64,000 nucleotides of DNA. Source: Heterodontus francisci. Lineage: Eukaryota. The notes beneath the pieces are model-generated. The model was not told the origin of the DNA and searched no databases. It saw only the letters and a program-made list of their open reading frames with translations. The stretch covers positions 7,006,001 to 7,070,000 of the forward strand of contig NC_090404.1 of assembly GCF_036365525.1 (NCBI RefSeq), in the 5' to 3' direction. The stretch's first letter is position 1, and the number at the start of each line of letters is the position of its first letter. The position numbers and the translations under genes were made by a program. Shown piece by piece: positions 6,647 to 46,189 of this stretch.

Positions 6647-6790
6647 TTGAGAATATTCAATCCACTCACACTTCAATTTGACTGAAGCTGTTTGACAAAT
6701 CTCGAAAAGTTTCATAGATTTAAAAAATAGTCTGAGATAAATATCCAGACCACGAAACCTCTGCTTCATTCTTTTATCCCTCTTTTACAG

Positions 6791-6799
6791 GTCAAGTGA
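6791..6799 (+). CDS. IGHM: IgM TM2 exon coding part (VK*), cluster A
   Basis: TTTTACAG|GTC AAG TGA; same as cluster B. Confidence 0.88.
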   Translation, partial: VK

Positions 6800-24196: not shown

Positions 24197-24475
24197 GAGG
24201 TAGGACTGTAACCTGGGTTAGGAATTTAAGGAGGAGATGGTGACGCAGTGGTAATACCACTGCATTAGTAATCCAGATGCTCAGGGTAATGGCCGAGAGA
24301 CTTGAGTTCAAATCCCACCAAGGCAGCGGTTGGAATTTAAATTCAATTAATTAATACAAAATGAATTGAAAATCTGGAATTGAAAGCTAGTCTCAGTAAT
24401 GGCGCCGTAAAAATTATCATTGATTGTCGTAAAAACACATCTGGTTCACTAATGTCCTCCAGGGAAGGAAACCTA

Positions 24476-25564
24476 CCAAGTGTTCCCCTTGTCCCCACTT
24501 TCCACCCCACCAGCCTCCATATCCAAAGGATCATCCTCCGCCATTTCTGTCACGTCCAGCGTGATGCCACGACCAAACACATCTTCCCCTCCCTTTTCCT
24601 GTCAGCATTCCAAAGGGATCATTCACTCTGCGGCACCCTCATCCACTCCTTCATTACCCCCCATCACCTCATCCCCTTCCCACAGCACCGACCCCTGCAA
24701 TCACAGGAAGTGCAATACCTGCGCTTTGACCTCCTCTCTCCTCACTATCCAAGGCCGCAAGCACTTCTTTCAGGTGAAGCAGCTATTTATTTGCACTTCT
24801 TTCAAATTAGTATACTTTATTCGCTGCTAACAAGGCGGTCGCCTCTACACTGGGGAGACCAAATGCAGATTGGTTGACCACTTTGTGGAACGCCTCCGCT
24901 CAGTCCGTAAGCATGACCCCGAGCTTCCGCTTGCTTGCCATTTCAACACCCCACCCTCGCCCATCGCTCTCAAGCTCACATCTCTCTCCTGGGATTACTG
25001 CAGCGTTCCAGTGAACATCAACGCGAGCTCGAGGAACAGCATCTCATTTACCGATTAGGCACACTACAGCCTGCCGGACTGAACACTGAGTTCAATAATT
25101 TCAGAACATGACAGGCCCCTTTTTATTTTTAGTTATTTTTTCTTTTTTATTTGTTTATTTTATTTTAATTTGTTTCGTTTGTTTCTACTGTGTCTACCCT
25201 TTTTGTTTAATGTTTGTGCTTGGGCTGTTCATTTTCCAGTCAATTGACACCTTCTCTGTACCAATGCTTTGGCTTTCAGAACAGCATTAACATACCGTTT
25301 GCCTTTGATCCATGACCTTCTGGTCAGTTATTCTCTTTGACCTTGTCCTATCAACAACTTCTATTTTGTTATCTCTTGCCTCACCCCCGCTTTACTTGCC
25401 TATAACCTTTTACATTTCTAGTATTTGTCAGGTCTGATGAAGGGTCACTGACCTGAAACGTTAACTCTGCTTCTCTCTCCACAGATGCTGCCAGTCTTGC
25501 TGAGTATTTCCAGCATTTTTTGCTTTTATTTCAGATTTCAGCATCCGCAGTATTTTGGTTTTAT
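24476..25564 (+). mobile_element. Penelope-like element 3' fragment (decayed GIY-YIG)
   Basis: VPLVPTFHPTSLHIQRIILRHF...; closely similar to 8320-9442. Confidence 0.88.
25430..25466 (+). ncRNA. Minimal hammerhead ribozyme motif with intact catalytic core
   Basis: CTGATGA-AG-GGTC/ACT/GACC-T-GAAAC-GT-T; palindromic helix III (AACGTT). Confidence 0.65.
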
Positions 25565-26427
25565 GAACTTGCCATTCTTACCTGGTCTGGCCGACATGTG
25601 ACTCCAGACCCACAGCAATGTGGTTGACTCTTAGCTGCCCTCTGAACTCAATTTGTGGGCAATCTGGGATGTTCAGCAAATGCTGGCCTGCCTGCGACAC
25701 AACATCCCATGAAAGAGGAAAAAAAAATCTTTTCTCTATGTCACTTACCACCAGAATCCCAATCCTGATTAATTTCAGCACAGTGGGATGGTGCCTCCTG
25801 TTAGTTACACTCGGATATTATTCTCACAGGTTCAGTCGATATTTGGGAAACAGACTCATATTCCCCATCGGGAAATTAGCAACACTGTCAGATGATGGCG
25901 GTAAGATATTATCTCAAAGTGATAAAGGCAGGGTTTGAATGTAGATGAATGTGACTGAGGTGGTTGACGGGGGCCTGGTTTGATGAACCTTCCGTTGGGG
26001 ACACACAAGGAGAAGATTTCTTCTGGTTTCGCTGTGGAAATCTCCTGTGAAAACTGGTTGAACGAAAACGCAAGCTCATTCTTTTCAAATGTGATCACTG
26101 TTTTGCTAGAGATAGCGACCAGGGGAAATCTATCCGACAGAGGGGGTAGTTCAGTGTAAACAGGGTATGCGGATGATAATGAAGTTGATGCTCTCGATGA
26201 ACATAAACAAACACTCAGTGTGATTGATGTCGGCCTGTAAAGTATACCCAAACCTCAGGAAAGACGATGCTTTCCTCACATCATGGACTGCACGCACTGA
26301 CTCACTGACTCCACCATCAGATACTTCATTCAGTGGCTCAAAGGTGCTTTGACCCTCATTTAAGTCTCGTTTCAATATATGGCGGGTGGATTGGACACTG
26401 CTTCAAGCCAGAGGAACAATGGGACCA

Positions 26428-26494
26428 GGAAGTGACGTTGAACCAATAGGAGCCTCTGACGGAATTGTTCCGGTGCAGGATTGGCCTTTTAAAG
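26428..26494 (+). promoter_or_regulatory. TCR V-type promoter: ETS/CRE decamer, CCAAT and TATA-like boxes
   Basis: GGAAGTGACGTTG 26428-26440, CCAAT 26443-26447, TTTTAAAG 26487-26494, all just upstream of the leader ATG. Confidence 0.55.
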
Positions 26495-26518
26495 AGACCG
26501 ACAGGTTCGGTCTCGGCA

Positions 26519-26570
26519 ATGGCCATGCGGATATTCAGCGCCTGGGTTGTGTGTGCGGTGTTTATACTTG
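26519..26570 (+). pseudogene. Leader exon of TCR alpha/delta V pseudogene 1
   Basis: MAMRIFSAWVVCAVFIL(G), phase-1 GTAAGG donor at 26571, 105-nt intron. Confidence 0.8.
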
Positions 26571-26675
26571 GTAAGGATGACTTCAATCATGTTGTCTCCA
26601 AGTTACTGTGTTAATATTATTTCAGTAACGCCTTTTAATTCTCTATCTTGTCTTCGTCCTGAACGCATGTTACAG

Positions 26676-26955
26676 ATCAAAGTGATGGCGATACTGTTAC
26701 TCAGTCCCAGTCTTCAGAAAGCGGGAGAGAAGGTGAAGCAGTGACTATAAGATGTACCTATAGCACAGGTATTAGTTATATTGGTACCGGCAACAAGCAG
26801 AAAAAGACTCTCAGTTTGTTGTGTGGAGATGGTCTGGGGATACACGACAATTGAAAGGAGAAGATGTTGGAATTCGTTTCTCTGCTGAGCTCCAGACCGC
26901 GACTAAATTCACCAGTTTAACTATCTCGGGTCTGCAGCTGACTGACTCTGCCGTT
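26676..26955 (+). pseudogene. TCR alpha/delta-type V exon, pseudogene 1 (CDR1 frameshift, truncated before YYC, no RSS)
   Basis: DQSDGDTVTQSQSSESGREGEAVTIRCTYSTGISY //frameshift// YWYRQQAEKDSQFVVWRWSG...RFSAELQTATKFTSLTISGLQLTDSAV. Confidence 0.85.
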
Positions 26956-27346
26956 CTCCTTCCTTCACCATCAGTGGATTAAAGTCATATTGCCTTTATT
27001 GCCAGTCTCCAATTACCCTGAGATGAAGACTCCAACCCCAAACGGATGATGTAGACTTTTAATAGCTTTGTGTCATGGACCCGCAAGACGGGCAATTGTA
27101 AAAGTGCAAGTAAAAATGGAAAATAGATGCCATTCTTAACAGCACCAACCAGGTCCGGGGACTGAATACAAAAAATCACATGAGCCAATTCAACACCTGA
27201 CTAACATCATCTCACACTGATCATTGCACCCGTTCTCCTTCCTTCACCATCAGTGGATTAAAGTCAAACAACATTCTCCATGAAATCAGTGTGATACTTC
27301 ACGAATATTGTACCGGGTGCTCTGCGTTTCAGATCTTCACATTCAA

Positions 27347-28480
27347 GAACACAAGAAATAGGAGCAGGAGTAGACCATGTGGCCCATCGAGCCTGCTCCG
27401 ACATTCAATACAATCATGGTTGATCTTAGACTTCAACTCCACTTTCCTGTCCCTTGATTCCCTGAGAGACCAAAAAACTGCCTATCCCAGTCTGAAAATT
27501 ATTCAACGATGGAGCATCCACAACCCTCTGGGGGAGAGAATTCCAAAGAATAACAACCCGTTGAATGAAGTAATTTCTCCTCATCTCAGTCCTAAATGAT
27601 CGTTGCCTTCTCCTTAGACTGTGTCCCCGTGTTTTAGATTCCTCGATCCACGAATACAATCTCACAGTTCCTATCCTATTCAGCCCCGTCAGAATCTTGA
27701 ATGTTTCAATGAGATCGCCTTTCATTCTTCTAAACTGCAGAGAACATAGGCCCAATGTACTCATTGTACTCTCATCATTAGAAAATCCCCTCAACCTAGG
27801 GACCAGTTTAGTGACCCTTCGCTGTACCGCCTCCAGTGCAAGTATATTCTTTCTTCCATGTGGAGACCAAAACTGCAGCCAGTATTCCAGGTGCGGTCTG
27901 ACCAAACCATGTACAATTTTAGTAAGACTTCTTTATTCCTGTACTCCAATCCCCTTTCAATGAAGGCCAACATGCCATTTGCCTTCCTAATTGCTTGCTG
28001 TACCTGCATGTTAACTGTCTGTGTTCTTTGCACAAGTACACCCAAGTCTCTTTGAACATCAACACTTACAAGTTTCACACCTTGAAAAAAATATTCTGCT
28101 TTTCTATTCTCACCGCCAAAGCGAATAACTTCACACTTCCCTACATTATATTGCATCTGCAATCTTGTTGCCCGCTCACTTAACCCGTCTATATCTCTTT
28201 GCAGCCTCCCTGTATCCTCCCGACAGCTTACCTTTCCATCCATCTTTCTAGCAGCAGCAAACGTAGATACATTACCCTCTGTTCCTTCATCTATGTCATT
28301 GATATAGATTGTAAATAGCTGAGGCCCCAGAGCTTATCCTTGTGACACTCCACTATTCACTGCCTGCCAACTTGAAAATGCCTAATTCATGGCCACTCTT
28401 TGCTTCCTGTACATAAACCAATCCTCTATCCAGGCTAATATATTAACCTAAACGCAATAAGCCCTTGTCTTGCCTATTAA
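27347..28480 (-). mobile_element. CR1-type LINE 3' fragment
   Basis: VRPHLEYWLQFWSPH...RGHSLR...RNYFIQRVVILWNSLP. Confidence 0.88.
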
Positions 28481-28817
28481 CCTTTTATTTGAATATTGAA
28501 CTGCGGGGTCCCAGTGTGGGGATACTGCGGCCGTTATGGAGTTTGGGCTTTTCGCTTTCTGGGCTCCTCTGGTATTGTTGTTTGATTATTATATTTGTGT
28601 TTATTACTGCGACTTTCTGCACATTCCACTATTGATAGAACTGACGTACATTCATCTACCTCTAGTTCTATTAGCCTCTCTGTCTATCTATCTGCCTGTA
28701 TTATTATATTTCCAACTATCCCACTCTTCCCCTGTTAGTCAATCAATTCATCTTCGGCTGCTTCCTTTGTCTCCGGACCAAGGTTTCCTTAAAATGAGAA
28801 GCATATTATCTCTTCTA

Positions 28818-28818
28818 C

Positions 28819-28882
<64 letters not shown>
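28818..28882. repeat. (ATCT)n microsatellite
   Basis: About 16 perfect tetranucleotide units. Confidence 0.95.
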
Positions 28883-28883
<1 letters not shown>

Positions 28884-28948
28884 GATCTCTCTGTCTATTA
28901 TCTATTCGACGTTCTGCATCCACGGTTAACCAGGAATATTTTTTGCGG

Positions 28949-29233
28949 GAGTGAGTTATGGTGACTCTGTCAGACAGTGGCCAACAGAAGCCCAATATTT
29001 GGAAGGAGTTTCGATGAGCATTAATTGTATCTATTCAAACTCCAATGTGAGCTATTCTGTGCAGCTTTATCGTCAGAGCCAGAACATGGCTTCCACTTTC
29101 GGAATTCAGGCATATCCCGATGGAATGTACGAAGTTAACGGTCATTCTGGAAACGTTCGCAATTCGAGCTTTTCTCATCGTGACTGGGCTGCAGCTCGTT
29201 GACAGCGCCCTGTACTACTGTGTCTTGAACCTA
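28949..29233 (+). pseudogene. TCR alpha/delta-type V exon, pseudogene 2
   Basis: GVSYGDSVRQWPTEAQYLEGVSMSINCIYSNSNVSYSVQLYRQ...NSSFS //2-nt shift// LIVTGLQLVDSALYYCVLNL; acceptor reads CGG instead of CAG (28946-28948); invariant Trp replaced by Leu. Confidence 0.82.
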
Positions 29234-29270
29234 CACAGAAAAAGACCTCGGGATACTTCGTACAAATACC
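29234..29270 (+). other. Damaged 23-RSS of TCR V pseudogene 2
   Basis: CACAG + 23 nt + ACAAATACC (29262-29270); consistent with CACAGTG having lost TG. Confidence 0.7.
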
Positions 29271-29289
29271 GTGTTCTGTAAGGTCTTTG

Positions 29290-31630
29290 GTAGGCGGTGA
29301 AGGAACCAATAGGAGGGGAAAATATACTTGCCCTTGTCCTAACCAATCTGTCTGCCGCACATGCATCTGTCCATGACAATATTTGTACGAGTGACCACCG
29401 CACAGTCCTTGTGGAGACAAAGTCCCGTCTTCATCATGAGGATACCCTCCATCGTTGTGTGGCACGACCACCGTGTTAAATGAGATAGATTTCGAACAGA
29501 CATAGCAATGCAAAACTGAGCATCCATGAGGCGCTGTGGGCCATCAGCAGCAGCAAAACTTTACAACTGCAATCTGTAACCTCATGGCCCAGCATATTCC
29601 CCACTCTATCATTGTGAATCATCAGCGAACATCCCCACTTCTGATCTTATGATTGAAGGAAAGCCAGGGAACCAACCCTGGCTCAATGAAGAGTGCAGAA
29701 GGGCAAGCCAGAAGCAGCACCAGGCATACCTCAAAATGAGGTGTCAACCTGCTGAAGCTGCAACACATGACTACTTGCTTGCCAAACAGCGTAAGCAGCA
29801 TGCGATAGACAGAGCTAAACGATCCCATAACCAACGGATATGATCTAAGCTCTGCAGTCCTGCCACATCCAGCCATGAATGGTGGTGGACAATTAAACAA
29901 CGAACCGAAAGAGGTGGCCACAAATATCCCCATCCTCAATGATGGGGGAGCACAGCACATCAGTGCAAAAGATAAGGCCGAATCAGTTGCAATAATCTTC
30001 AGCCAGAAATGCAGAGTGGATGATCCATCTCAGCCTCCTCCTGAAGTCCCCAGCATCACAGATGCCAGACCGAAGGCACTGGATACTGCAAAGTGTATGG
30101 GACCTGACAACGTCCCAGCAATTGTACTGACGACCTGTGCTCCAGAACTTGCTGCGCCCCAAGCCAAGCTGTTCCAGTACAACTACAACACTGGCATCTG
30201 CCCGGCAATGTGGAAAATTGCCCAGGCATGTCTGGTACTCTAAAAGCAGGACAAATCCAATCCGGCCAATTACATGCGCCAAACCACCCCCCGCCCCCAC
30301 CCCACCTCCCCACAAGTCCACGTTCAATCATCAGTAAAGTGATGAAAGGTGCCGTCGAAAGTGCTATCGTGCAGCATTTACTTAGCAATAACCTGCTCAG
30401 TGACGCTACGTTTGGGTTCCGCCAGGGCCACTCAGGGGCCGACCTCTTTACAGCCTTGGTTCAAGCATAGAAAAAAGAGCTGAACGCAAGAGGTGAGGCG
30501 AGAGTGACTGCCCTTTACATCAAGACAACATTTGACCGAGAATGACAGCAAGGAACCCGAGCAAAACTGAGGTCAATGGGAAACAGGGGAAAACTCTCCA
30601 CTGGTTGGAGTCGTACCTAGCGCAAAGGAAGATGGTTGTCGTTGTTGGAGGTCAATCATCTCAGCTCCAGGACATCACTGCAGGCGTTCCTCAGGGTAAT
30701 GTCCTAGGCCCCACCATTTTCAGCTGCTTCATCAATGACCTTCCTTCAATCATAAGGTCGGAAGTGGGGATGTTTGCTGATGATTGCACAATGTCCAGCA
30801 CCATTCATGACTCCTCAGATACTGAAGCAGTCCGTGTAGAAATGCAGCAAGATCTGGACAATATCCAGGCTCGGGCTGATAAGCAGCAAATAACATTCGT
30901 GCCACACAAGTACCAGGCAATGACCATCTCCAACAAGAGAGAATCTAACCATCTCCCCTTGACATTCAATGGCGTTACCATCGCTGAATCCCCCACTGTC
31001 AACATCCTGAGGGTCACCATTGACCAGAAACTGAACTGGAGTAGCCATATAAGAGCTACAAGAGCAGGTCAGATGCGAGGAATCCTGCGGCAAGTAACTC
31101 ACCTCTTGACACTCCAAAGCCTGTCCACTATCTACAAGGCACAAATCAGGAGTGTGATAGAATACTCTCCACTAGCCAGGATGGGTGCAGCTCCAACAAT
31201 ACTCAAGAAGCTCGACACCATCCAAGACAAAGCAGCCCGCTTGATTGTCACCACATCCACAAACATTCACTCCCTCCACCGCCGCACACAGTGGCAGCAG
31301 TGTGTACCACCTACAGGATGCACTGCAGCAGCGCACCAAGGCTCCTTCGACAGCACTTTCCAAACCCGCGGCCTCTACCAAATAGAAAGACAAGAGCAGC
31401 AAATGGTTGGGAACAACACCACCTGCAAGTTCCCCTCCAAGCCACACACCATCCCGATTTGGAACTATATCACCATTCCTTTCCTATCGCTGGGGGAAAT
31501 CCTGGAACTGCCTGCCTAACAGCACTGTGGGTGTCCCTACCCCACATGGACTGCAGCGGTTCAAGAAGGCTACTCACCACCACCTTCTCAAGGGCAATTA
31601 GCGACGCCCACATCCCATCAATGAAATAAA
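29290..31630 (+). mobile_element. CR1/L2-superfamily LINE (second family), decayed ORF2
   Basis: SDH, GPDNVP, GVPQGNVLGP, FADDCT and YKAQIRSVIEYS; ends CACATCCCATCAATGAAATAAAA. Confidence 0.88.
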
Positions 31631-31689
31631 AAGCACATTCATCTGCTTTATTTGTATACTTACTTGCGTGTGATACGAAGAATAATCTG

Positions 31690-32110
31690 GAGATTACTAC
31701 TTCTGAGCTCTGGCATGCTAATTTCCTCCCTATCTCCCTAAATTCTGATGAAAGAGACCACATCCCCCTTTCTGCCGATGTCATTGATACCAATATGGAC
31801 CACGACTGCTGGCTGTTTATGATCTCCCCATCAGGGTGCGCTGCAGACATTCGGTCACATGTTTGACCCTGGCACCAGGAAGGCAACACACCATCCTGGA
31901 TTCACATCTGCATCCACAGAACGCTGTTTATTCCCCTAACGATCGAATCTCCTACCCATGTTGCTCTTGCAGTCTTCTTTTCGCCCTCTGCGCAGCTGAG
32001 CCAAGCGTGGTGCCATGGACGTGGATCTGGCTGCACTTCCCAGATGAACCAAAACTTTTATTAGTATTCAGAACTGAATACTGATTGGAGAGTGAGATGC
32101 ACTTGGGTTG
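31690..32110 (-). mobile_element. CR1 ORF1 esterase fragment
   Basis: Minus strand encodes VCCLPGARV and AVVVHIGIND-like motifs. Confidence 0.6.
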
Positions 32111-32850: not shown

Positions 32851-34651
32851 CCCCGAACTCAGAACTGTGACCCCGAAGGGTTTCATCTCGACATCTTAAA
32901 GGGGGCGTCACCAGTGAGACTGGTGCCTGGAAAAAGGACAGAAAGACCAAGAGACACTGCGAGGGAAGCGAAAGCTAAATATAGCTGAGAGGGCAGGACG
33001 GCCCAGAAGGATAGTGGTGGGGGAGGAGTGTGGGGAGAGATTGGAGCAGAGAAAGAGTTCAAGCATCAACGTCACCCAGTCCCAAATATAATTCTGAGCC
33101 CTTAAGAAGGGTCGTTAATTCTTCTCTGCCTGAACCTGATTTGATATTCAACCACAGGAGACCTCGCGCCTGAACATCAGGAGTGCAGAGAAAAATGCAT
33201 TCAAAAGACAATGTCGGAAGATACTGGGGTCGGAACAGAAAGCTCTGGTGATGTTCCCGTGACCGGGAGGTACCGAAAGAATCTGATGAGACAGTGACGA
33301 AGGAGGAGAGAAATTTCAGGTTGTGAAAGTGTGAGGTTCACTGACGGATCCCTGGGCTGATTTTTAGGGAGATGGTATAAGAGGGAATGGAGCAGGGAGA
33401 GAGGATCCCTGGTGTGATGTTCAGTGAGTTCAGGGAGATGGTATCAGATGGAATCGAGCAGAGAAGAGAGAAAGGTCATCAGAGAAACATGTGACAGAGG
33501 GGCAGGGGTAACAGGTATTGCAGAAAAGGTGAAGGCAGAAAGTTGGCGTGTGCATAACAGAAAAGTGGTGAGTGTATGTGAGACAGATTAGCTGGAGTGT
33601 GCGGGTTGTGTGAAGAACAGAAAATGTGAAGACAGAGTCTCTGTATCTGATAGACCTCAGTCTCCTGGAATCATTCCTACAATTTGTGCTCTCTTTTGTG
33701 TCAGATGTGTCCCAGGCTCTGGGAATCATCCCAGGGATTGTGCTCCCCTGTTTGTCAGATCGGCTTCAGGCTTTGGAAATTATTCCCAGGAATTGTCCTC
33801 CCCTGTTTGTCACATAGTCTTTGGGCATTGGAAATCATTACCCGGGGTCGTCCTCTCTGGTTCATTAGATAGGCCCAAGGTTCTGGCATCATTCTTAGAA
33901 TTTGTGCTCCTTGTCGTATCAGATAGACCCCGGCTCTTGAAATAATTCCCAGCATTTGTGTTCGATGGTATATTGTGTCAGATACGCACCAGTCTCCAGA
34001 AATCATGCCAGGGTTTGTGCTCTCTCATGTGTTATATTTCTAACCTGTGCAGTACCTGTCCTGAGAATGTTTAAAGGAACAGTGCAGATAGAGCTCCCCT
34101 GTGTAACTAACCTGTGCCGTGCCTGCCCTGGGAGTGTTTGATGGGACAGTGGGGACGGAGATTTACTCTGTTTCTAACCGGTGCTTTGCCTGTCCTGGGA
34201 GTGTTTTATGAGAGAGTGCAAAGCGAGCTTTATTCTCTATCAAACCTGTACCGTGCCTGTCCTGGAAAGGTTTGATGGGACAGTATTCCTCCATGTATCA
34301 GAGTGCGATGGAGCAGAGCGCTGCTCTTCAATATAACCTGGCACATGACTGTGGCAGACCATAAGATGGGAGAATTCAGTGAGTTGCTCCTGGTCACTGT
34401 CCGGTCATTCAGCCACTGGGATTGGCAAGATACGGCAGAACGAAAGGTGTCTTTACTCTGAAGGGACTCTGGTTGGCACTGCAGCTCCTTCACCGAAGAG
34501 CCTTGGGATTAAACGCAACCCGGACAGGACTGTGGCAAAATAGCTGTCAGGAAAGTGAGGAAACGTGTAATCGGGAAAAGGGAGCGGTGGTAGAGGGTCA
34601 TTAGGGCAAGGAATTCAGTCAAGTCCAAGTTAGTCCATGTGTTACTCAATA

Positions 34652-34657
34652 TTTATT
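34652..34657 (-). terminator. Candidate poly(A) signal of membrane IgM mRNA (cluster B)
   Basis: AATAAA on the minus strand about 420 nt after the TM2 stop; the homologous site in cluster A (7224-7229) reads AATAAT. Confidence 0.55.
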
Positions 34658-35076
34658 AACAATTTTAAAAAAGAACATTTTACAGAGAGGATTTAAAGAA
34701 AGGTCCAAAATGAATATAACAACTTTACGTCACATTGAGTACAGAACACATACGATCTGAGCTGCCAGCTCTCTGTAAAACTGTAACAGAGCAGAGAGAG
34801 AAAACGGAGCTCAACATAAAAAGGGACCACTTGTGAATAAGGAATAGTTACTTATTTACACATGAAATTCAAACGAAGGTGAAACTCGAAGACGCATTTA
34901 CATTAGAGCCACGATTATCCCACATATTTTAAAGAGGAAAACGGGAATACTATTTATGATTCTCTCAGCTACAGATTCAGAACTATAAATTGAAGGCATT
35001 TTACTGTTGGTGTTTTTCTGTTATGCAGAGATGTTTAAAAAACGAGGAAAATCCAGGGTGGCATAAATTCACTCGA

Positions 35077-35085
35077 TCACTTGAC
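35077..35085 (-). CDS. IGHM: IgM TM2 exon coding part (VK*), cluster B
   Basis: TTTTACAG|GTC AAG TGA. Confidence 0.9.
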   Translation of the reverse strand, partial: VK

Positions 35086-35224
35086 CTGTAAAAGAGGGAT
35101 AAAGGAGTGAAGCAGAGATTTCGTGGTTCGGGACATTCATCTCAAGGTTAAATTTATGAAACTTTTAGAGATTTGTGAAACAACTTCAGTTAAATTGAAG
35201 TGTGAGTGGATTGAATATTCTCAC

Positions 35225-35352
35225 CTTCACCAGAGTGACGGCAGCACTGTAGAAAATGCTCAGGAAGAACAGGATGATGAATGTGGAAGCGGTTGTCCAG
35301 ATGTTGCCGCTCTCTTCCTCATTGTCTTCAATCCAGATGTGGTCTGAGGAAT
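35225..35352 (-). CDS. IGHM: IgM TM1 exon (cluster B)
   Basis: DSSDHIWIEDNEEESGNIWTTASTFIILFFLSIFYSAAVTLVK; AG and GTGAGA intact. Confidence 0.93.
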
Positions 35353-35959
35353 CTACGCGGATATAGAGGAGGAAATATATTCAAATAGTTTATTAATCCA
35401 GCATATATTTTGCATTCGAATGTCTCTTCCTTCAGCTATTATTGGTTTTCTAATTTAATTTTCAATGTGTGGCTATTAAGTTAATCATGCTCAGTAATCT
35501 ATCTCTGTTACCAACTCCACAATCATTCTTCCTTTATCATCGTCCTCCAGGCCTTATTGGAAAATGTGTCAGTTTTTTCTTCAGTGTCAGGCGCTTTTTT
35601 ATTTTAGATGCAGTTGCGGTTTTTCTTAAGGGATTATTATGGTGAAATATGAGATATCGAGGGAGGTTTACTGATCGATAACAATTATTTTGAAGATGGG
35701 TTCGGATATCTACTTATTTGGAGATTGTCAATTGTGCTGAGTAAGAGCTCGGATGCGAGTTCCAATCTTATTTGTATGTGATGAATGTCGCTTGAAAATC
35801 ATTTACATTCCTCAGTTTCTAAGTGAGAATTTTGCTTCGTTATCTTTTTAGGTCCACCGTGCATTCGGGAAGTTGTTGGAGATGGTGTCCATTCAATCAG
35901 TGCATTTGAATTCTACTTTCGTCAACAGCCTGGCGATTTTGTCTGCGCATTCAGTGTTT

Positions 35960-36890
35960 GTGCAAATGTGTACGAGTATCTTCCTTTGCATCACTCTCTG
36001 TTTCCATGTGTACGTGTGTGTGTGTGAGTGTTAATGTGTGGGAACAATGTAGTTGTTTGGGTGCCCATGTGTGTGTCAATGCGCGTGTTTATATGTTAAT
36101 GCCTGTGTGTATGTGTCCATGTATGTTAGTGTGTTAATGTGCCAATGTGCATTGATTTGTGTAATCAAGTAGCCGTCTGTGTGTGTTTGGTGTGTGTGTA
36201 TGTGTGTGTTTGTGGTGTGTATATGTGTGTGTGTAAGTCTATGTGAGTTGTGTTTCTTTATCCGTCTTTGTTTATGAGCGGTTGATGTTTATTTATGTCG
36301 GTGTCTGTGTCCCTATGCGTGTGTTAATATCTGTGTTTCTGTGTTGATGGATGTGTTTATGTTTCCCTGTGTTTCAATGTGTGTTTATATGTCCATGTGT
36401 GTGTGCTAATGTGTTATTTATGCCTGCTTGTGTCCCCATGAGTGTGCGAATGTATGTTTTTGTTGATGTCTACGTTTATGTATTAATGCATATATTAATG
36501 TGTGTTTATGTGTGCATGTGTGCGAATGTATGTGCTGATGTGCGCGCTTGTGTATCCATGTTAATATTGGTGTCTATTTGTTTGTGAGTGAGTGTGTTCA
36601 TGTGTTAGTGTGTCTGTTTATCTGTGTGCATATGTACCCGAGTCTGTTAATATGCGAGTGTATGTGTCCATGTATGTGTTAATGTGTGTGATAGTGTGTG
36701 CTTTTATGTCTAGGTTTCTGCTTTCGTGAGACTGTACTAACGTGTGCATTTATGTTCGTGTTTGCGTATGTGACTGTGGGAATCTTTCTTTCAGCGTTTG
36801 GGTTTGTTTGTGTATGTAGATGCAAATGTGTGTTTGTACATGTGCGTGTGTTTATGTGTTTGTTTATGTCCGTGTGCCTGTACATTTTTA
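35960..36890. repeat. TG-rich low-complexity tract in the CH4-TM1 intron (cluster B)
   Basis: Degenerate (TG)n; counterpart of 4640-5920. Confidence 0.85.
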
Positions 36891-37924
36891 TTATTAAACG
36901 AAATTTCAGAGAGTACAAATAACCACGTCTAGCCCTGACGGTGTGCACTGCAGAGAATATTCTTTATCGTTCTGTGCGTAAATCTATTCTGTGCAAGATG
37001 CAATATGACATCAGCTGGATGAATGCAACAATGAAAATGATGGGCCTCAGCACAACAGGAATAGTGGATGATTAAATCACCAGTTAGATTTAGACTATTG
37101 GAATTTAATCTGTCAGGGAACGTGGCCAACAGGAAAATGTTTTAAGATATCATGTTGCATAAAGATATATTTTGCAATATGTTTCCCATTTGGAATGTTT
37201 AAACCTTCGTACAGTGAACTGGAAGCCGACTTTGAACTGATGGCAATTGAATCCGATCATGAAGAGCAGTTGGCTTCCAATCTCTCTGCAGGGGGAGTGG
37301 GAGTATAGTGGGTTAACAAATGCCTTTACTCCTTTCTCTGTCGAGGAATTGGTGAGGGGTGGGGGCCTATTACAGTAGGTCCACAATTGCCTTCCTTCTC
37401 TATTGGTGAAGTGGAGTAACAGTGGATTAACAATTACCCTTTCCCCCTCTCTGTTTCGGATGTGGATCTACAGTAGATTAATAAATTGTACTTTCCCCTC
37501 TTTCTGATGGAGAATTGTGAGTGCAGATCGTACTTGTGTGTGGCCTTCGGTTCAGTTCCCAGAGCATGTGATGCTGAAACTGCAAACTGACCTCAATACC
37601 GAAGGGGTGGACAACACGAGAAGCAGGAACACCGATATCTAAATGCACTTCGTTTGTTCGTCAGAAAAGGGAAATTTTCAGATATCCCCAGACAAGGCAG
37701 GAGGAAAGCTAAGTTGCTGGTGTTACCTTCCGGAATCCTGTAATGAATCAGTTTTCCTCTGTCGCTAACCTGTGGGATCTGAGTTGGGAGCACTGATTGC
37801 ACAAGACTTGGGCCCGAGACCTGCAAATATCCCACTTTAGATGAATAGATCTACCCTTAGAAAATGTGGGAAGCAGAATTAATTGAGCGCTTGTGTATTT
37901 GAATCGTGATTGGAGGAAAATGTC

Positions 37925-37940
37925 TTTATTGATTTTTATT
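37925..37940 (-). terminator. Tandem poly(A) signals of secreted IgM mRNA (cluster B)
   Basis: Two minus-strand AATAAA (37935-37940 and 37925-37930), 30-45 nt after the secretory stop. Confidence 0.8.
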
Positions 37941-37968
37941 TAAGTATTAAAATGCAATCGAGAGATTC

Positions 37969-38360
37969 TCATTGACATGAATTGACAGTATCCAACAGTG
38001 CAAGGGAAATGTTCACAAAACTCGGTTTACCGCTGGATTTATTAACTGTTCTGTTGATGATCTTCAAGGGGATCGCTTCATGTCCCACCACACAGGAGTA
38101 AGAAGCGCCGCTGGCCCACTCCTCCGCTGCAATGGATAACAGGCTGTAGATGAAGTAGGAGCTATTTTCGTTCTCCGCCATCACCTCGGTGTTCTTGTAG
38201 TTTCCGGGATTCACCGACTTGTCATTGACGGTCCACTTGACGAATATCTCTCGGGGGGAGAAACCTCTCACTAAGCAGGTGAGGGAGAGGAACCTCTGAG
38301 CGGAGACATCGTCTGCCGGGGGCAGGAGGACAGATACGGACGGTTCCCGCAGATCTTTAT
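37969..38360 (-). CDS. IGHM: IgM CH4 plus secretory tailpiece (cluster B); membrane-form donor at 38030
   Basis: 392 nt, open; NKDLREPSV...[19 protein letters not shown]. Confidence 0.96.
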
Positions 38361-38861
38361 CTGCAGAAAAATTAAAATAGATATCAATGAACTGGATAAT
38401 TCCACAGATAATTAAACCGTTGGTTAGATGTGAGAGAAATGTGATTTGTGCTGAATTTTAAAGGTTTCCCTTTCCCCTTTGCGGCCTGTCCTGTTTCCCA
38501 GCCCGGAGCAGAGGCGGATGCAATCCCCTTCGCAGAGAACTTAAAGGATTAGACTGGAAAATTACATAGAAGTAAAAAGCACAGGAACAGGCCATTCAGC
38601 CCAGCTAGCCTGTGCTGGTGTTTATGCCGCCCACGAACCTCCTCCCACCTCACTTCATCTCTTTCTAAACCTTTCTCCCTCATCTACTTATCTAGCTTCC
38701 CCGTAATTGCATCACCTCTGGTTCCAGAGCGTTTCGTTTGCAGAATTACAATTAAATTATCAGAATAATCCATGAGAACACTTAATAGGACGAATTGTTC
38801 CTTGTACAAACACCGGAAATAAGCACAACCTCTCACTTATTGTTTCAATCTCACCGCTCAC

Positions 38862-39170
38862 TTTTTTCCTTGTGGATGAAATCTCTGAGAGGAGTCGGCA
38901 GATCCTGATGGCTCACCACGCAGTAGAAATCAACCCCACTCAGCCAGGATTGTGCCGAGATGTCTACGGTGCTGATCACACTGTCGGAATCCTCTCCGGG
39001 TTGCACGGCAATCTCAGATTTCAAAGGCTTCTGTTCTTGTGTCCAGGACACGTTGACACCATAAGGAGCATTAGACACGACGCAGGTTAAGGTCACCGTC
39101 GCCTCCAGTAAGACCTGTTCTATTGATGGTGGCAGTAGCTTAATTACTGGATCATTGCAGGAACAAGGAA
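38862..39170 (-). CDS. IGHM: IgM CH3 exon (cluster B)
   Basis: 309 nt, open; [15 protein letters not shown]...[24 protein letters not shown]; canonical splice sites. Confidence 0.96.
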
Positions 39171-39736
39171 CTGTAAAACAGAAATGGCAATAAAACAAAG
39201 ATTCATCTTCAGAATCAGACACCAATATTCAGCCTTCACTGTCTCTAGGAGAATAAATCAACTTCGAGACATCGACCTCAGGCTGTTGCTTTATTAATAT
39301 CGTTTATTGGAAGGACAACAACCTGAAAAAGCTTCCGGGAGATTCTGTAACATATACTGTGTACTTGCACCCTAAAAAGCCGATAATGGGCTTTGAAGTA
39401 AGTACCCAGAGTAAAAATCGAATAATTGCGGGAGAAATTGTGTTACGCACTGAATAATGTTCTTCCCGAAATCCCTTCGGAGCTAGCTCGAAGGGCCGTA
39501 TGGCCTACTCCTGTTCCTAATTCGGATGTTCGTTTGTTAGTATTTCCGCCCGTCTATCAGTCCTTGCACCGGATCACATCTCCTCTAAATATAATGGCTC
39601 TGACACCCACGAGCTCTTTATCGAATTCACACTGGCTCATAACGAGAGTCAAATGAAATCCCGAATTTTAGGCCCAACAGGAAACAAACTTAATTTTCTG
39701 GCACCTTGTCACGGTATTTGGGGAGAGGAAAATATT

Positions 39737-40076
39737 TAGATTTTAGATTTAGAGATACAGCACTGAAACAGGCCCTTCGGCCCACCGAGTCTGTGCCGAC
39801 CATTAACCACCCATTTATACTAATCCTACACTAATCCCATATTCCTGCCATTTCCTCACCTGTCCCTATATTCCCCTCCCACCTACCTATACTAGGGGAA
39901 ATTTATAATAGCCAATTTACCTATCAACCTGCAAGTCTTTTGGCTTGTGGGAGGAAACCGGAGCACCCGGAGAAAACCCACGCAGACACAGTGAGAACTT
40001 GCAAACTCCACACAGGCAGTACCCAGAATTGAACCCGGGTCGCTGGAGTTGTGAGGCTGCGGTGCTAACCACTGCA
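39737..40076 (-). mobile_element. V-SINE (HE1-like)
   Basis: GCAGTGGTTAGCACCGC...GGTTCAATTC; TGTGTGGAGTTTGCA core; TCTAAA tail. Confidence 0.8.
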
Positions 40077-40923
40077 TATGAAGGAACCAATCGGAGGAGG
40101 GGTGAAAAATCGGGAAAATGCACTTCTGAGGAATCGCTTTGAGGTGCAGAACAACTTACAATAACGGTATGAGGCAGTTTTCTTATATCTGTCATGAGTC
40201 AGAACGCCTCATATGTCAGTCTGCAGTCAGAAGGCGATCTGACAAGAGGGCAATAATAGAAACATAGGAAAAAGCGTAGGTCATTCAGCCCCTCCAGCCT
40301 GTTCTGCCATTCAAATAGGCAATGGCTGACCTGCATCTTAATCCCGTCTGCCCATATGCGATCCTTAATAGTCTTGCTTTGCATAAATCTATCAATCTCA
40401 ACATTAAAATTTCCAATTGATGCCAAACTTCAAGAGCGAGTTGAGGGAGAGAATACCAGATCACCGATAGCCACTGCATAAATGTTAGCTTCCTGATATC
40501 ATCCCTGAATAACCTTGGTCTCATTTGAAAGTTATGCCCCCTTGCTCTCGAGTCCCTCACCAGAGGAAATATTTTTCTCCATCGACTCCATCAATTGCAG
40601 TAAACATCTTAAACACCTCAATTAGATCCCCCTTCAATCCTGAAAGCAATGCCAGTTTGGTCTGTGAAATCTGTCCTCTTAATTTAACCCGTTCAGCCGC
40701 GCTACAATTCAAGTCAGTTTCTGTTGCACCACTCCCACGGCCAATAGATTCCTCCTGAACTCCGGAGTTCTGAATTGAACACAGTTTTCTAAATCGATGC
40801 TCTTTCTAGCGCTTGATCCCGAGGCTGTAACCAGGAAACGTCCAGCCACTTATTGCCGCTCTGAATATAATCAGCCAACTCAAGATAAACCTGATATCAA
40901 GGCCACCTCATTCACTATGTGAC

Positions 40924-42901
40924 AACAATGAGATGTAAGACTGAGGATTGGGAGTGTTTTAGAAACCAGCAAAGGACAACCAAAACGTTGATAAAAAGGG
41001 AAAAAATAGAATTTGAGAGTAAACTAGCCATCAATATAAAAATAGTTTGGAAGATCTTTTATAAGTACATAAAAAGGAAAAGAGAAGCCAAAGTAGACGT
41101 TGGTCCCTTAGAGGCAGAGACAGGAGAAATCATCATGGGGAATGAGGAAATGGCAGAGGCATTGAACAAATATTTTGTGTCTGTCTTCACAGTAGAAGAC
41201 ACAAGTTCCATACCAGAAACAGGCAGTAACCTAGGGGCTAAAAAGAGTGAGAAAATTAAGGATATTGATATCAGCCGAGAAAAAGTATTGGAGAAACTTG
41301 ACAGAGTAAAATCTGACAAGTTCCCAGGACCTGATGGCTTACATCCTGGGGTTCTAAAAGAGATAACTGCAGAGATAGTGGATGTGATGGCTATGACTTT
41401 CCAGAATTCCTTAGATTCAGGAATGGTCCCATCAGCCTGGATGTTATGGCAAATGTTATGCCGCTTTTCAAGAAAGGAGGTAGAGAGAAAACAAGGAACT
41501 ACAATCCAGTTAGCCTGACGTCAGTCGTTGGAAAGATGCTGGAAACTATTATTAAAGAAGTCTTGACATTACACTTGGAAAAGCATAGTATGATTAGAAC
41601 AAGTCAGCGTGGTGTTACTAAAGGGAGATACTGTTTAACAAATGTATTAGAGATTTCTGAGGATGTAACTAGTAGGGCAGATAAAGGGGAACGAGTAGAT
41701 GCAGTGTACCTGGACTTTCAAAAGGCATTCAGTAAGGTGCCACATAAAAGAATAATAGGCAAGGTCAGGGCACATGGTGCTGGAGGTAGTATATCAGCGC
41801 GGACAAAGGATTGGTTAACAGACAGGAAGCAGAGAGTGGGCATAAATGAGGCATTTTTAAGTTGGAAGGCAGTGAATAGTGGGGTGCCGCAAGGATCAGT
41901 GCTGGTGTCTCAGCTATTTACACTCTATATTAATGACTTGGAAGAAAAGACAGAGAGTAATGTATCTAAGTTTGCTGATGATACAAAGTTCAGTGGAAAG
42001 GTAAGCTGTGGGGAGGATATATAGAGAGGCTGCAAAGAGATATAGACAGGTTAAGTGACTGGGCAACAAGTTGGCAAATGGAGTATTATACAGGGAGTTC
42101 TGAAATTGTTCACTTTGGTCGTAAAAATAGAAAAGCCAAATATTTTGGTAGGAGTGAAAATGGTAAGTGTTAATGTTCCAAGAGACTTGGGGGTACTCCT
42201 GCAAGGAACACACAAAGTTACCATACAAGTGCATCCGGCTATTAGGAAGGTAAATGGCATGTTGGCCTTTTGTGCAAGGAGATTGGAGTACAGGAATAAA
42301 GAAGTCTTACCAAAATTGTACAGGGCTTTGGTGAGATCGCAAATGGAATACTGCGTGCAGTTTTGGCCTTCACATTGAAGAAAGGATGTCCTTTCACTTG
42401 AGGCAGTGCTGCGAAGATTTACTAAATTGGCCGCATTGGTTGATGGGCTTGTCCGGTGATGAGAGACTGAGTAAATTGGGCCTATATTCTCTGGCGTTTA
42501 GAAGAATGAAAGGCAATCTAATTGAGACACACGAGATTCTGAAAGGGCTTGATAGGGTAGAAGCTGAGAGATTGTTCCCATTGGTCAGGCAATCATAAAC
42601 ACGGGGAAACAGCCTCAGGATAAGGAGCCATTAATTCAGGACTGAGATGAGAAGAAATTACTGCACTCAAAGAATTGCGAATCTTTGGAATTCTCCACCA
42701 CAGAGGGTTGTGGATGCTCCATCATTGAATACATTTAAGGCTGGCATAGATAGATGTTTGGCCTCGCGGGTAATCAAGGGATATGGGGAGCGGGCAGGAA
42801 AGTGGAATTGAAGCCCAAGAACAGCCATGATCGTATTGAATGACGAAGCAGGCTCGATGGGCCATATGGTCTACTTCTGATCCTATTTCTTGTGTTCTTG
42901 T
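40924..42901 (+). mobile_element. CR1-type LINE 3' half inserted antisense in the cluster B CH2-CH3 intron
   Basis: PGPDGLHP, YLDFQKAF, GVPQGSVL and FADD; absent at the matching cluster A site (about 752). Confidence 0.9.
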
Positions 42902-43117
42902 ATCAAAGCAGAGGGAACCATTATTTGGTGATGTAATAACATGTTGAACCGTGAGCAAACCTAATTCAGCACTCACAGCGGAACAAAGCAAAATAAAACC
43001 TACATGATGGTAAATTAGAAATTATTCTGTGATTTGTACTAATTCCAATAATTTCCTGCCTTTGATATTCATCATAGAACAGAATGATCTGGAGCTTTCT
43101 CCATTTGTGTCTCTTAC

Positions 43118-43435
43118 CCTGAGATCCGGTGATGTTTCGGCTTTGGGTGACCGCTTGATGGGAGACCTGGCAGGTATAGACCGTGTTGGTGAACCATTCC
43201 CCAGCGGGGACTGTCAGCCGACTGGTCGCTGAGAAGTTTCCGTTCACTTCACAGGCGGGAGAGGTGACGAAGCCCGAATCCATGGATTGTCCATCCTTCA
43301 ACCAACTCACGGTTATTGACTCTGGATGGAAATCGATGATTGAACACAAGACAGTTGCAAATCTGCTGCTTGTGATTTCTTCACTGGAAGTCTGGGTGAG
43401 GAGAACAGTTGGATGGACGATGTCGCCTTGACAAT
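43118..43435 (-). CDS. IGHM: IgM CH2 exon (cluster B)
   Basis: 318 nt, open; [11 protein letters not shown]...[20 protein letters not shown]. Confidence 0.96.
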
Positions 43436-43638
43436 CTTCAAGAAAAACATGTTAGACATTTCTAGAAGAAATTAATAACTAATGCAAACTGTTCTTACAT
43501 TTTAACAGATGTCAAGCAGACACTAACTGGAATCTCCAGGAATTAGAACAGAGCACAGTGCTCTAAATGTGATATAGCCAAAGCTCTACAAAAGATTATT
43601 ATAGCTTTTGTGTTTTTCACAGTTTCCACAACACTAAC

Positions 43639-43935
43639 CTGGAATTTCCTTGATCCAGACTGACTCTCCGCGTCGAACCTCGCAGTAGATTTTGCTGCTT
43701 CCCACCTCTGATTCGGTGATGGTTAACTGGCTGCTCAGGGTGTAGGTTCCCTTCTTGTTCAGCACTGACGGGTAAGTCTTCAGTCCAGTGGTGATCGTCT
43801 CTTGATCTTTCTTCCAGGAAACGCTGGTGATTTGGGGGATGTAGTCCATCGCCAAACAGCCGTAGGCAACGGAGCCACCGGTGTTGGGTTGTTCACAGGA
43901 GCACAGACCATAAAGTGTTGGGGGAGACGGTGTCG
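43639..43935 (-). CDS. IGHM: IgM CH1 exon (cluster B)
   Basis: 297 nt, open; [16 protein letters not shown]...YGCLAMDY...[18 protein letters not shown]. Confidence 0.96.
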
Positions 43936-44672
43936 CTGGGAAACAATGGCAGATTGAACAAGTTAGACTCTGTGATTCTTGCTTATCAAGTAACCAGACA
44001 CATCGGAATTTAACTCCAGCTAGAAACTGATTCCAATATTTTCCGATTAAAACCTTCATCCGCATTTCAGCTTCATTTAGATCCATCGTTTGGTGATAAT
44101 CGCCTGTCGGTCCCCTGGTTAGGAAAACACCTCTCTTTCAGGACCTGTCACATTACAAAATTAAGAGCCTTTTGAAGTCATCTCAATAAAGTACCCTCCA
44201 TTGGACGGATCTGGAAGAGGAGATTCCCCACTATTTCAGCTAGTACTTATTTCTAAACCAACAGCACCTTGCCAAAAAAAAAGCACTCGGCATTTATTAA
44301 TTGCAGTTTTTGGAAATTTACTCTCTGCAAATTGACTGCTGGGTTTCCCCACCCCTCCACATACCACCACCACCCACCCACCCCACCCCTCCACCCCACG
44401 CCCACCCCCACCTCTCCCCACCCCCAAATAGCGGCTACTCTTAAAAAGAGGCATCGCAATGTGTGCTTATAAAACGAGTTTATAACCCGAAACTTGACTC
44501 CCAGGCAAAGTCCTTTCATTATTTCCCCATAAAAAAACCTACAACAAATCCTAGCATGTACATGACCCAGAATTATAAAATAATAGAAATGATAGCAGAG
44601 AAATAGGCCATTCGGTCCATCAAGCCTGTGAAAGATCACTCCAGCGATCCCGCTGACCTTCCAATTACTAAT

Positions 44673-44840
44673 TTAAAGCAACATACTGCGGATGCTGGAA
44701 ATCAGAAATAAAAACAAGAAATGCTGGAAATGCTCAGCAAGTCTGGCAGTATCTGTGGAGAGAGAAACCGAGTTAACGTTTCAGGTCAGTGACCCTTCAA
44801 CAGTGACCTGTTGAGTATTTCCAACATTTCTTGTTTTTAT
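44673..44840 (-). mobile_element. Penelope terminal-repeat fragment with short inverted end and degenerate hammerhead (44771-44807)
   Basis: Reverse complement of the 9310-9442 tail; flanked by TTCCAATTACTAAT and TTCCAATTCCTAAT. Confidence 0.75.
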
Positions 44841-45842
44841 TCCAATTCCTAATCTTCTTTTCTAAAGTTCCATTTTATCCAGCTATGTTGGATTCTGTTG
44901 ACAGCTCTCTTTCTGATAGGACATCCCAGATCCTAACAACCCCCTGTGTAGAAAAGTAGATTCATACCCTCTTCCTTCATTCTTTTGACGCTGATTTTAA
45001 ATCAGTGCCCTCTACAGTCCAACTCACTGATCTGGGCAAATTGGTTTCGAAATTTCTGGATAAAACATTCATTATTCAAAACACCTCTACATGACTTCAT
45101 TTTAATCTTCTATGTTCCCACAACAATAAAGAACTTTAACAATAAATAGTTGAAGTCTCCTTTGAAACATGGACTGAATCATTTAGTACACAGATTTCAG
45201 AGGGGAATTTTTACACAACCTAGTTTCTGGAATTAAAATTTTAGATGACTCGGCATTGACTCTAGACTATCAGTTTCCTTCTCAGTACTTGAAGATTGTG
45301 ATTTGTGTTCTAGCTTTACTGAATGGATCTCTCCCGAGTTTACTGCTCCCTCCAGCTCAATTAATAATCCGAAATAAATCCGATTCCTAAATATCTGTCA
45401 TCTGGAATGATGTTCTTGAAATGGTCCATTTAATTTTCCAAAGTATCTTCCCACCCCTCACCAGTGAGAACTGGTGTTGCTGACTGTGTTGTTACAGACA
45501 CATCTTCTTGCAGCTTGCACCGACCATAATGTGAACATCAGGAGAGGTTTCTTCTATAAATATCTGATATTCACATTACTTACACATTATACATCGAGTG
45601 AATATCAGTAAGTTCCAGGCAAGGGAGGACAAAAGTTCCTGAAGTGTTATTGCTGACATGGCCAACTCTCACTTCTGTTTTGTGTGGACAATTCAAACAC
45701 TTGAGGCTTATTGGTCAGATATTGAAAGCTCGCTCACCAAAAGGATGGAAAAGAGATTGTCGATGTTGGTGGCACAAAGGTTGGACAGATGGGCTCTCAA
45801 ATGACATTAGATAACATTCCACATCAGACAACATTCAGAAAT

Positions 45843-46148: not shown

Positions 46149-46189
46149 TTTGGGGAGCAGAATTTCGAAGTTCGAGAATTATACGAAAC

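Follow-up and report, generated by a model that had tools for sequence, protein, structure and literature searches.

V pseudogenes of probable TCR delta/alpha type in a LINE-rich spacer between two IgM miniclusters of Heterodontus francisci

IgM miniclusters and the spacer between them

The window, a stretch of 64,000 nucleotides from Heterodontus francisci, holds two IgM miniclusters arranged tail to tail, A on the + strand and B on the - strand, and the 26-kb spacer between them contains two further V segments, V1 and V2. Minicluster A is represented by its 3′ part (positions 319-7722, +), consisting of CH2 (319-639), CH3 (2347-2715), CH4 with a secretory tail (3275-3574), and a 3′ homology block reaching to about 7722; its V-D-D-J-CH1 portion lies to the left of the window. 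Minicluster B (34156-54096, -) is unrearranged. It comprises a VH exon (54096-53791) with a 23-RSS (53790-53752), D and J RSSs recovered by an RSS scan (53367-52540), CH1 (44086-43637), CH2 (43349-42969), CH3 (39225-38854), CH4 with a tailpiece (38271-37972), and a 3′ block extending to about 34156 as judged by blastn homology to A. A has a C1-set match, its exons are 84-96% identical to those of B (tblastn), and block homology links 1840-7722 of A to 39735-34156 of B (blastn). CH4 of B matches human and other IgM Fc regions, tailpiece included, at 1e-37.

Only three V regions were found in the 64 kb by tblastn with 82 V domains, namely V1, V2, and the VH of minicluster B, and no TCR D, J, or C elements were found in the 64-kb window. 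Between V1 and V2 lies a high-copy LINE fragment (27345-28500, -) with reverse-transcriptase (RT) C-terminal ORFs, which stops roughly 40 nt short of the candidate V2 leader. Its read depth is 1e4-1e6, compared with about 37 in the flanks, with loose ends at 27344/27345. Pfam gave no match for the short ORFs of this fragment, which is called a LINE because its ORF text resembles the other RT ORFs of the window and because of its copy number. A 5′-truncated LINE (29297-31900, +) begins 27 nt past the V2 RSS and runs from the end of an endonuclease domain into RT, with an RVT_1 match at 30542-31516. A 13-nt match of the region upstream of V1 to 29303-29315 was considered as a third V promoter and rejected, as it falls inside the endonuclease ORF of this LINE and is at about chance level.

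Structure and lesions of V1 and V2

The sequence-only reading had described two + strand V exons with frameshifts, and both are present at the stated coordinates, well outside what chance would give; their pieces match V-set domains. V1 is read from its sequence as a V-set segment (26519-26955, +) with an intact split leader. Putative promoter-like motifs lie 5′ of it at 26433-26494 (TGACGT at 26433-26438, CCAAT at 26443-26447, and TTTTAAAG at 26487-26494). The leader exon (26519-26570, +) encodes MAMRIFSAWVVCAVFIL plus 1 nt in phase 1 and is identical at 12 of 15 residues (80%) to the leader of P0002, a sawshark relative; translation would start at the ATG at 26519, while the start of that relative corresponds to a second ATG, at 26525. 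As had been claimed, the leader is followed by an intron of exactly 105 nt (26571-26675, +) bounded by GT..AG, and V1 therefore has the split leader with a phase-1 intron that is a hallmark of TRAV/TRDV.

The V-exon remnant (26676-26955, +) extends from FR1 to "DSAV" in FR3, reading DTVTQSQSSESGREGEAVTIRCTYS, then YWYRQ in a different frame, then ...LTISGLQLTDSAV. Since 26 nt separate the Cys23 codon (26753-26755) from the Trp41 codon (26782-26784), the frame is broken in CDR1. V1 thus retains Cys23 and Trp41 among the V-set hallmarks and is cut off before Cys104: homology ends at DSAV, and neither a Tyr-Tyr-Cys nor an RSS is present, which corrects the sequence-only reading. Lacking any RSS, V1 would be unable to rearrange. 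The missing 3′ end was sought downstream of the LINE by tblastn in the 64-kb window and was not found. A perfect direct repeat of 37 nt (26951-26987 and 27230-27266) occurs in single-copy DNA with a depth of about 40x; its first copy begins where V1 homology ends, the nucleotides CCGTT being common to both.

The V exon of V2 (28951-29233, +) reads GDSVRQ...EGVSMSINCIYS...LYRQ...GLQLVDSALYYCVL. Cys23 and Cys104 are present, and position 41 is occupied by Leu, not by Trp. The distance from Asp1 to Cys104 is 259 nt, which implies a net frameshift, and the break can be placed somewhere in approximately 29125-29175. An RSS does follow the exon (29234-29270, +) and is one of only 10 candidates returned by an RSS scan of both strands of the 64-kb window, lying exactly at the V2 end. 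It is decayed: the CAC of the heptamer (CACAGAA) and a good nonamer (ACAAATACC) are kept, and the spacer is 21 nt long and not 23 nt. A candidate leader exon (28536-28596, +; MEFGLFAFWAPLVLLFDYYI plus 1 nt), absent from the sequence-only reading, aligns weakly to the V1 leader at the DNA level. Its splicing, in phase 1, would join a weak donor (T|GTGTTT) to an acceptor at 28950/28951. The putative leader intron contains a TCTA microsatellite (28814-28890).

Both frameshifts are reproduced by short-read contigs from the same organism at single-copy depth with no differences. The contig over V1 (26645-26919) and that over V2 (28900-29300) match the assembly exactly, and depth is uniform at about 35-45x across V1, V2, and their unique flanks. 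The short-read DNA run probably derives from the very animal that was assembled, and an intact-frame allele may therefore still exist. Owing to the frameshifts, neither V1 nor V2 has the open reading frame of a functional TRAV/TRDV. Judged by their sequences, V1 and V2 are both pseudogenes with several independent lesions, predicted to be unable to contribute to a receptor.

Family assignment of V1 and V2

For classification, the leader, V exon, and frameshifted pieces were searched separately and their scores summed within one alignment of 83 rows, whose comparators were all retrieved as V1 matches and lack shark kappa and sigma light chains, TCR gamma V, NAR V, and curated TAILV. A MAFFT alignment of the four V pieces alone misaligned them and was left out as a profile query. 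Among 1.84 billion proteins searched by phmmer, the best match to the FR2-FR3 piece of V1 is P0002 (4e-18, 72% identity), a gene model of the sawshark Pristiophorus japonicus with the source name TCR alpha chain-like. V1 is 75% identical (67/89) to the V domain of P0002 and likewise to that of P0059, an old UniParc entry, with whose FR3 it agrees at 27 of 27 residues. P0059 in turn aligns with the human TRDV1-TRDC delta chain over 284 residues, including a C-domain strand and the transmembrane helix. Its identity to these shark TCR chains, together with the end-to-end alignment of P0059 with TRDV1-TRDC, places V1 in a V-delta/alpha family.

Several other comparisons bear on this assignment. 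PDB matches to the FR2-FR3 piece include many TRDV1 chains, and a tree groups V1a and V1b with P0002 and P0059 in a starred clade. The V1 matches whose constant region was examined are delta-type (P0002, P0059, P0022, and P0063) or alpha-type (P0050), and none is a light chain. By summed alignment scores among the 83 rows, VH rows, including the window's own VH, rank 58th to 79th for V1 and V2, and V-lambda rows rank 53rd or lower for V1; the clustering with Ig light-chain V that the sequence-only reading had named as its own refutation is not seen for V1. A word-based search for homologous proteins returned a single match to the V1 piece. These sequence comparisons support V1 as a TCR delta/alpha-type V, neither VH-like nor light-chain-like. 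One of the top V1 matches, P0007, bears the automatic name "immunoglobulin iota chain-like."

V2 is far more diverged, its best match being 35% identical. Its ten best rows by summed alignment scores, among 83, are nevertheless all alpha/delta-type V domains, whereas the 11 rows of VH, V-lambda, and TCR-beta-like domains score less than half as much and none comes higher than 55th; V-lambda rows rank 56th or lower among comparators that lack shark kappa and sigma. A word-based search for homologous proteins gave no candidates for the N-terminal piece, and the ESM Atlas yielded only low-score clusters without meaning. A quick tree of both V2 pieces placed them inside the V1 clade, a placement that the AU test marks as unreliable and that was set aside. 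V2 is unlike germline-fused VJ-C1 receptors of the non-rearranging, UrIg-like kind, because it terminates in an RSS instead of a J and no C1-set exon occurs between 7.7 and 34 kb.

V2 could alternatively be a V domain outside the alpha/delta type, either "intermediate between TCR and Ig" or VH-related (TAILV-like). Of the two frames possible for V2, one gives an FR3 whose best PDB match is an antibody VH, and a tree joining the N-terminal half to Ig/TCR-beta rows is compatible with the AU test (p 0.78); intermediate V domains have also been described from the corresponding region of other species, in the accessible text of that article (PMC12227049). This alternative is unlikely given that TCR alpha accounts for 56 of the 60 best PDB chains for the N-terminal half, that shark VH sequences, the one lying 25 kb away among them, come close to the bottom of the 83 rows in summed similarity, and that the exon ends in YYCVL, as in the alpha/delta V domains of the match set. 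V2 is thus likely of alpha/delta type by sequence. The description of both frameworks as TCR alpha/delta-like and not VH-like stands for V1 through P0002 and P0059; V2 is nearer to alpha/delta than to any Ig/TCR-beta-like comparator obtained, though at 35% at best its class is likely only.

Origin of the relics and relation to known systems

Very probably, the locus holds two dead TCR delta/alpha-type V segments within the 26 kb of LINE-rich DNA that separate two convergent IgM miniclusters, as relics of an interleaving that is already published. V1, whose V family is spliced to the TCR delta constant region in living sharks and has TRDV1 as its nearest human counterpart, would have been inactivated recently; it appears to have kept its leader, intron, and frameworks while losing the CDR1 frame and everything past FR3, including the recombination signal. 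V2 would be an older, heavily decayed V, probably of the same broad class, its damage comprising the absent Trp41, the frameshift, the damaged heptamer, a spacer that is short by two bases, and a LINE almost on its leader. Together, the relics indicate that in this species too one chromosome carries IgM clusters interspersed with V segments of TCR alpha/delta type. They may be the remains of a V array that was once continuous, and the region may be part of the antigen-receptor complex beside TRA/TRD; that IgM clusters were "dropped into" the V array is a conjecture as to the direction of events. A bolder version can be offered tentatively, in which a continuous TCR alpha/delta V array, of which the relics are the fossils, was entered by IgM miniclusters through segmental duplication, with an interleaved zone of >6 Mb, far beyond that described. 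If so, V-delta1-like genes would routinely lie within a few kb of IgM clusters, a proximity that would physically underlie both Ig-TCR trans-rearrangement and a shared targeting of somatic hypermutation.

It is also conceivable, though doubtful, that the V relics were moved out of the true TRA/TRD V array as passengers of the segmental duplication that spread the IgM clusters, the window then being an IgH cluster field outside the TCR locus. The lack of TCR D, J, and C elements in the window is in keeping with this, as are the low number of the V relics, their inactivation, and their embedding in LINEs, but at 90% likeness the depth over V2 and most of V1 is that of single-copy DNA, so any duplicate of them must be old. 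Highly improbable is the idea that V1 and V2 form a usable V pool common to B and T cells inside TRA/TRD, joining TCR delta/alpha or IgM D/J. The V2 RSS remains recognizable, expression of the V1 family is seen in a 1250-nt contig, from a probable RNA run, with 95% identity to V1 FR3, and Ig-TCR trans-rearrangements have been documented in sharks (cited in the accessible text of PMC12227049). Nevertheless, V1 has neither RSS nor Cys104, V2 lacks Trp41 and has the 21-nt spacer, the frameshifts of both recur in the short-read contigs, and, in two small runs whose RNA nature is a guess, V2 is not covered by any RNA contig and neither is the 5′ part of V1. The shared B/T-cell V reservoir proposed by the sequence-only reading therefore fails for V1 and V2, both being pseudogenes with several independent lesions. 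Least probable is an artefact, in which mis-assembly of a repeat-rich region filled with very high-copy LINEs produced the Ig/TCR juxtaposition or the frameshifts; Ig loci are reportedly error-prone in long-read assemblies, but the short-read contigs agree with V1, V2, and the unique flanks base for base. The arrangement is, moreover, published for four other species, as far as the accessible text goes (PMC12227049).

The preferred reading, that of dead relics of a published interleaving, provides a base-level example from one more shark of IgM clusters interleaved with TCR alpha/delta-type V segments. At least some interspersed V exons would then be dead relics and not a working shared repertoire, which tempers the idea of a common B/T-cell V pool. 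The lesions, if compared across copies and species, could serve as markers for dating the spread of IgM clusters; V1 and V2 alone open no new question.

In the accessible text of its description, the elasmobranch antigen-receptor complex (AgRC) places linked miniclusters of IgM, IgW, and IgNAR close to TCR alpha/delta, and V exons of TCR alpha/delta type lie between its IgH clusters, as mapped in four elasmobranchs in 2025 (Flajnik et al., Sci Adv 2025; PMC12227049). A further mark of the AgRC is its linkage to TRAC/TRDC, NAR-TCR, and PSMB5 along a single chromosome. The mixed Ig/TCR locus recognized in the sequence-only reading is borne out insofar as TCR-type V segments lie between two true IgM clusters; the idea itself was already in print, and Ig/TCR interleaving is not new, having been published in 2025 for other sharks and rays (PMC12227049). 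The window resembles the AgRC in having IgM miniclusters and intervening TCR alpha/delta-type V exons on one chromosome. The accessible text is silent on the intactness of the interspersed V exons, whereas here both are dead and the clusters stand tail to tail. TAILV/IgHV segments inside the TCR delta locus (Deiss et al., 2019; Criscitiello et al., 2010; cited in the accessible text of PMC12227049) likewise place Ig and TCR elements in one shark genomic neighborhood. However, TAILV is a VH-like V used by TCR delta, as outlined there, while the reverse is seen here, with TCR-type V among IgM clusters and neither V1 nor V2 VH-like. In comparison with the shark TCR delta chains P0059 and P0002, which are open and pass from a final YYCAL into J and C-delta, V1 has a broken frame, is truncated, and carries no RSS. 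The V pseudogenes and orphons of mammalian IG/TR loci are likewise frameshifted or truncated V segments with decayed RSSs amid repeats; relative to these, only the IgM-cluster neighborhood is special, with no functionally important difference.

Setting of the V pair

Searching the 64 kb by tblastn with 82 V domains returned three V regions only: V1 and V2, two + strand TCR V-like segments (26519-26955 and 28951-29233), and the VH of an IgM minicluster, cluster B. Cluster A, at the left end, lies on the + strand with CH2 at 319-639, CH3 at 2347-2715 and CH4 at 3275-3574. On the - strand, cluster B comprises a VH at 54096-53791 with its recombination signal (RSS), D and J RSSs, and CH1 to CH4 from 44086 to 37972, with a CH4 that matches IgM Fc at 1e-37, tailpiece included. 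Given these strands and the ends of the 3′ homology blocks (~7722 in A, ~34156 in B), the two clusters are therefore arranged tail to tail with the V pair in the 26-kb spacer between them, where the sequence-only reading had correctly placed TCR-like V segments. The remaining spacer sequence is LINE and Penelope-like debris. A pair of related + strand ORFs (8190-8936 and 24380-24877) shares a YIGET..R motif and a stretch rich in Cys, and both look like the GIY-YIG endonuclease end of a Penelope-like retroelement; the ORF at 8190-8936 had no match in Pfam.

In cluster B, recombination signals for V, D1, D2 and J are all present (52540-53790), and the cluster is thus germline-unrearranged. Both clusters also have an RSS-like site downstream of C-mu4, at 5549-5586 (+) in A and 36371-36334 (-) in B, consisting of CACAGGG, a 22-nt spacer and ACAAAAACA or ACAGAAACA. 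The two positions correspond between clusters, in the gap between two homology blocks, and the sites may be chance matches kept through homology or a conserved element.

Anatomy and lesions of V1 and V2

The region 26200-29500 was inspected with translation in all frames. V1 opens with an ATG at 26519, and a second ATG at 26525 is the counterpart of the start codon in its closest relative. The leader exon (26519-26570, +) ends in phase 1 and is followed by a GT..AG intron of exactly 105 nt (26571-26675, +). The V exon then translates as DTVTQSQSSESGREGEAVTIRCTYS up to a break, after which it continues in a new frame as YWYRQQAEK...RFSAELQTATKFTSLTISGLQLTDSAV. The codons for Cys23 (26753-55) and Trp41 (26782-84) are separated by 26 nt, and the frame is therefore broken in complementarity-determining region 1 (CDR1). 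Homology ends at ~26955, beyond which V1 has neither the Tyr-Tyr-Cys motif nor an RSS. At this truncation point begins the first copy of a perfect 37-nt direct repeat (26951-26987 and 27230-27266, 279 nt apart) in single-copy DNA, and its initial CCGTT, common to V1, looks like a microhomology junction. This suggests that a microhomology-mediated rearrangement at the repeat may have removed the 3′ end of V1 together with its RSS. A 13-nt identity, GAACCAATAGGAG, is found at 26440-26452 upstream of V1 and at 29303-29315, at the start of a LINE following V2; it lies inside the LINE endonuclease ORF and is probably due to chance (~0.08 such matches expected over the region).

The V2 exon (28951-29233, +), directly preceded by a good splice acceptor, reads GDSVRQWPTEAQYLEGVSMSINCIYS...LYRQ...GLQLVDSALYYCVL, with Leu instead of Trp at residue 41. 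Asp1 and Cys104 lie 259 nt apart, which implies a net frameshift, situated either near 29125-29135 or near 29172, where it would be the loss of CT within a TCTC run; V2 has no close intact relative by which to place it. An ORF at 28536, MEFGLFAFWAPLVLLFDYYI (+), could be the V2 leader, in which case splicing would use a weak donor in phase 1. The RSS previously attributed to V2 stands as an RSS-like tail at 29234-29270 (+), made up of CACAGAA, a 21-nt spacer and ACAAATACC, though this spacer length and heptamer depart from a proper signal. At equal thresholds the whole window holds only ten RSS candidates on both strands together, about half of them the expected signals of cluster B, so that an RSS exactly at the V2 end is not a chance match.

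DNA-run contigs from the same organism showed zero differences from 26645-26919 and 28900-29300 at 35-47x. Both frameshifts are therefore present in the reads, confirming the breaks that had been proposed and are read directly in the window. Since this depth equals that of the unique flanks, V2 and the greater part of V1 each occur once at 90% likeness; a repeat extending from 27345 to ~28500, at depths of 1e4-1e6x, stops ~40 nt before the candidate V2 leader begins. In the framework 3 (FR3) bin of V1 (26874-26954), DNA depth is ~8-fold, and a 1250-nt contig from the same animal's probable RNA run, its RNA nature being a guess, is 95% identical to V1 FR3. The genome thus contains intact, expressed relatives of the V1 family (V-delta1-like) at other loci. 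The 5′ part of V1 and all of V2 matched zero RNA contigs in these small runs, likewise only guessed to be RNA.

Family of V1 and class of V2

Searches were run on the pieces of V1 and V2 separately, exons and frameshifted pieces never being joined, and Pfam recognised a V-set in the pieces. Among 1.84 billion proteins, the top match to V1 FR2-FR3 is P0002 (4e-18, 72% identity), a sawshark (Pristiophorus japonicus) chain whose source name is TCR alpha chain-like, and the nearest matches come from several sharks. A follow-up search led to P0059, an old UniParc entry for a rearranged V-(D)-J-C shark chain. Of 89 aligned residues, 67 in V1 are identical to P0002, and the count is the same for P0059, whose FR3 matches that of V1 throughout (27/27). 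With the human 9C2 delta chain (TRDV1-TRDC), P0059 gives a 284-residue alignment that includes the transmembrane helix and pairs CLASEFTPKEIEL with CLVKEFYPKDIRI; P0002 likewise aligns with 9C2. By sequence likeness, these alignments make V1 a member of a V-delta family (alpha/delta pool) with TRDV1 as its nearest human V, in agreement with the many TRDV1 chains among V1's own PDB matches. In an 87-row tree, P0002, P0059 and both V1 pieces share a starred clade, apart from a group made up of the VH, V-lambda and TCR-beta-like rows.

V2 has diverged much further. Its summed alignment scores place alpha/delta V domains in all of the top ten positions under both frame hypotheses (best row P0002, 35% identity) and all eleven Ig/TCR-beta rows at 55th of 83 or lower, in a comparator set biased to V1-like sequences. 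Of the 60 PDB chains that best match its N-terminal half, 56 are TCR alpha, with weak E-values. Evidence on the other side is that FR3, in one frame, has antibody VH as its best match, and that a grouping of the N-terminal half with Ig/TCR-beta rows was kept in the AU test (p 0.78). V2 is judged quite likely to be of alpha/delta type.

In the bamboo shark, a Chiloscyllium punctatum gene model (P0005) joins an alpha/delta-type V, whose RSS is read through, to a VH-like V that is 56% identical to the window's VH; TCR-type and VH-type V segments are therefore direct neighbours there too.

Relics and the elasmobranch pattern

In live relatives, V segments of this family bear a 23-RSS, recombine with D segments of TCR delta or J segments of TCR alpha, and are expressed with C-delta. 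Lacking an RSS, V1 is unable to rearrange, and it is also incapable of encoding a domain; V2 carries four independent defects. Both are nonfunctional relics, whose worth is as markers of locus history. The sequence-only reading thus identified the kind of locus correctly, but its idea of a V reservoir shared by B and T cells fails for this pair. The mixed Ig/TCR locus it headlined is a pattern already published: IgM clusters are interleaved with TCR alpha/delta-type V exons in four other elasmobranchs (Flajnik et al., PMC12227049), and compared with the arrangement described there, the window adds one fresh instance of the same pattern.
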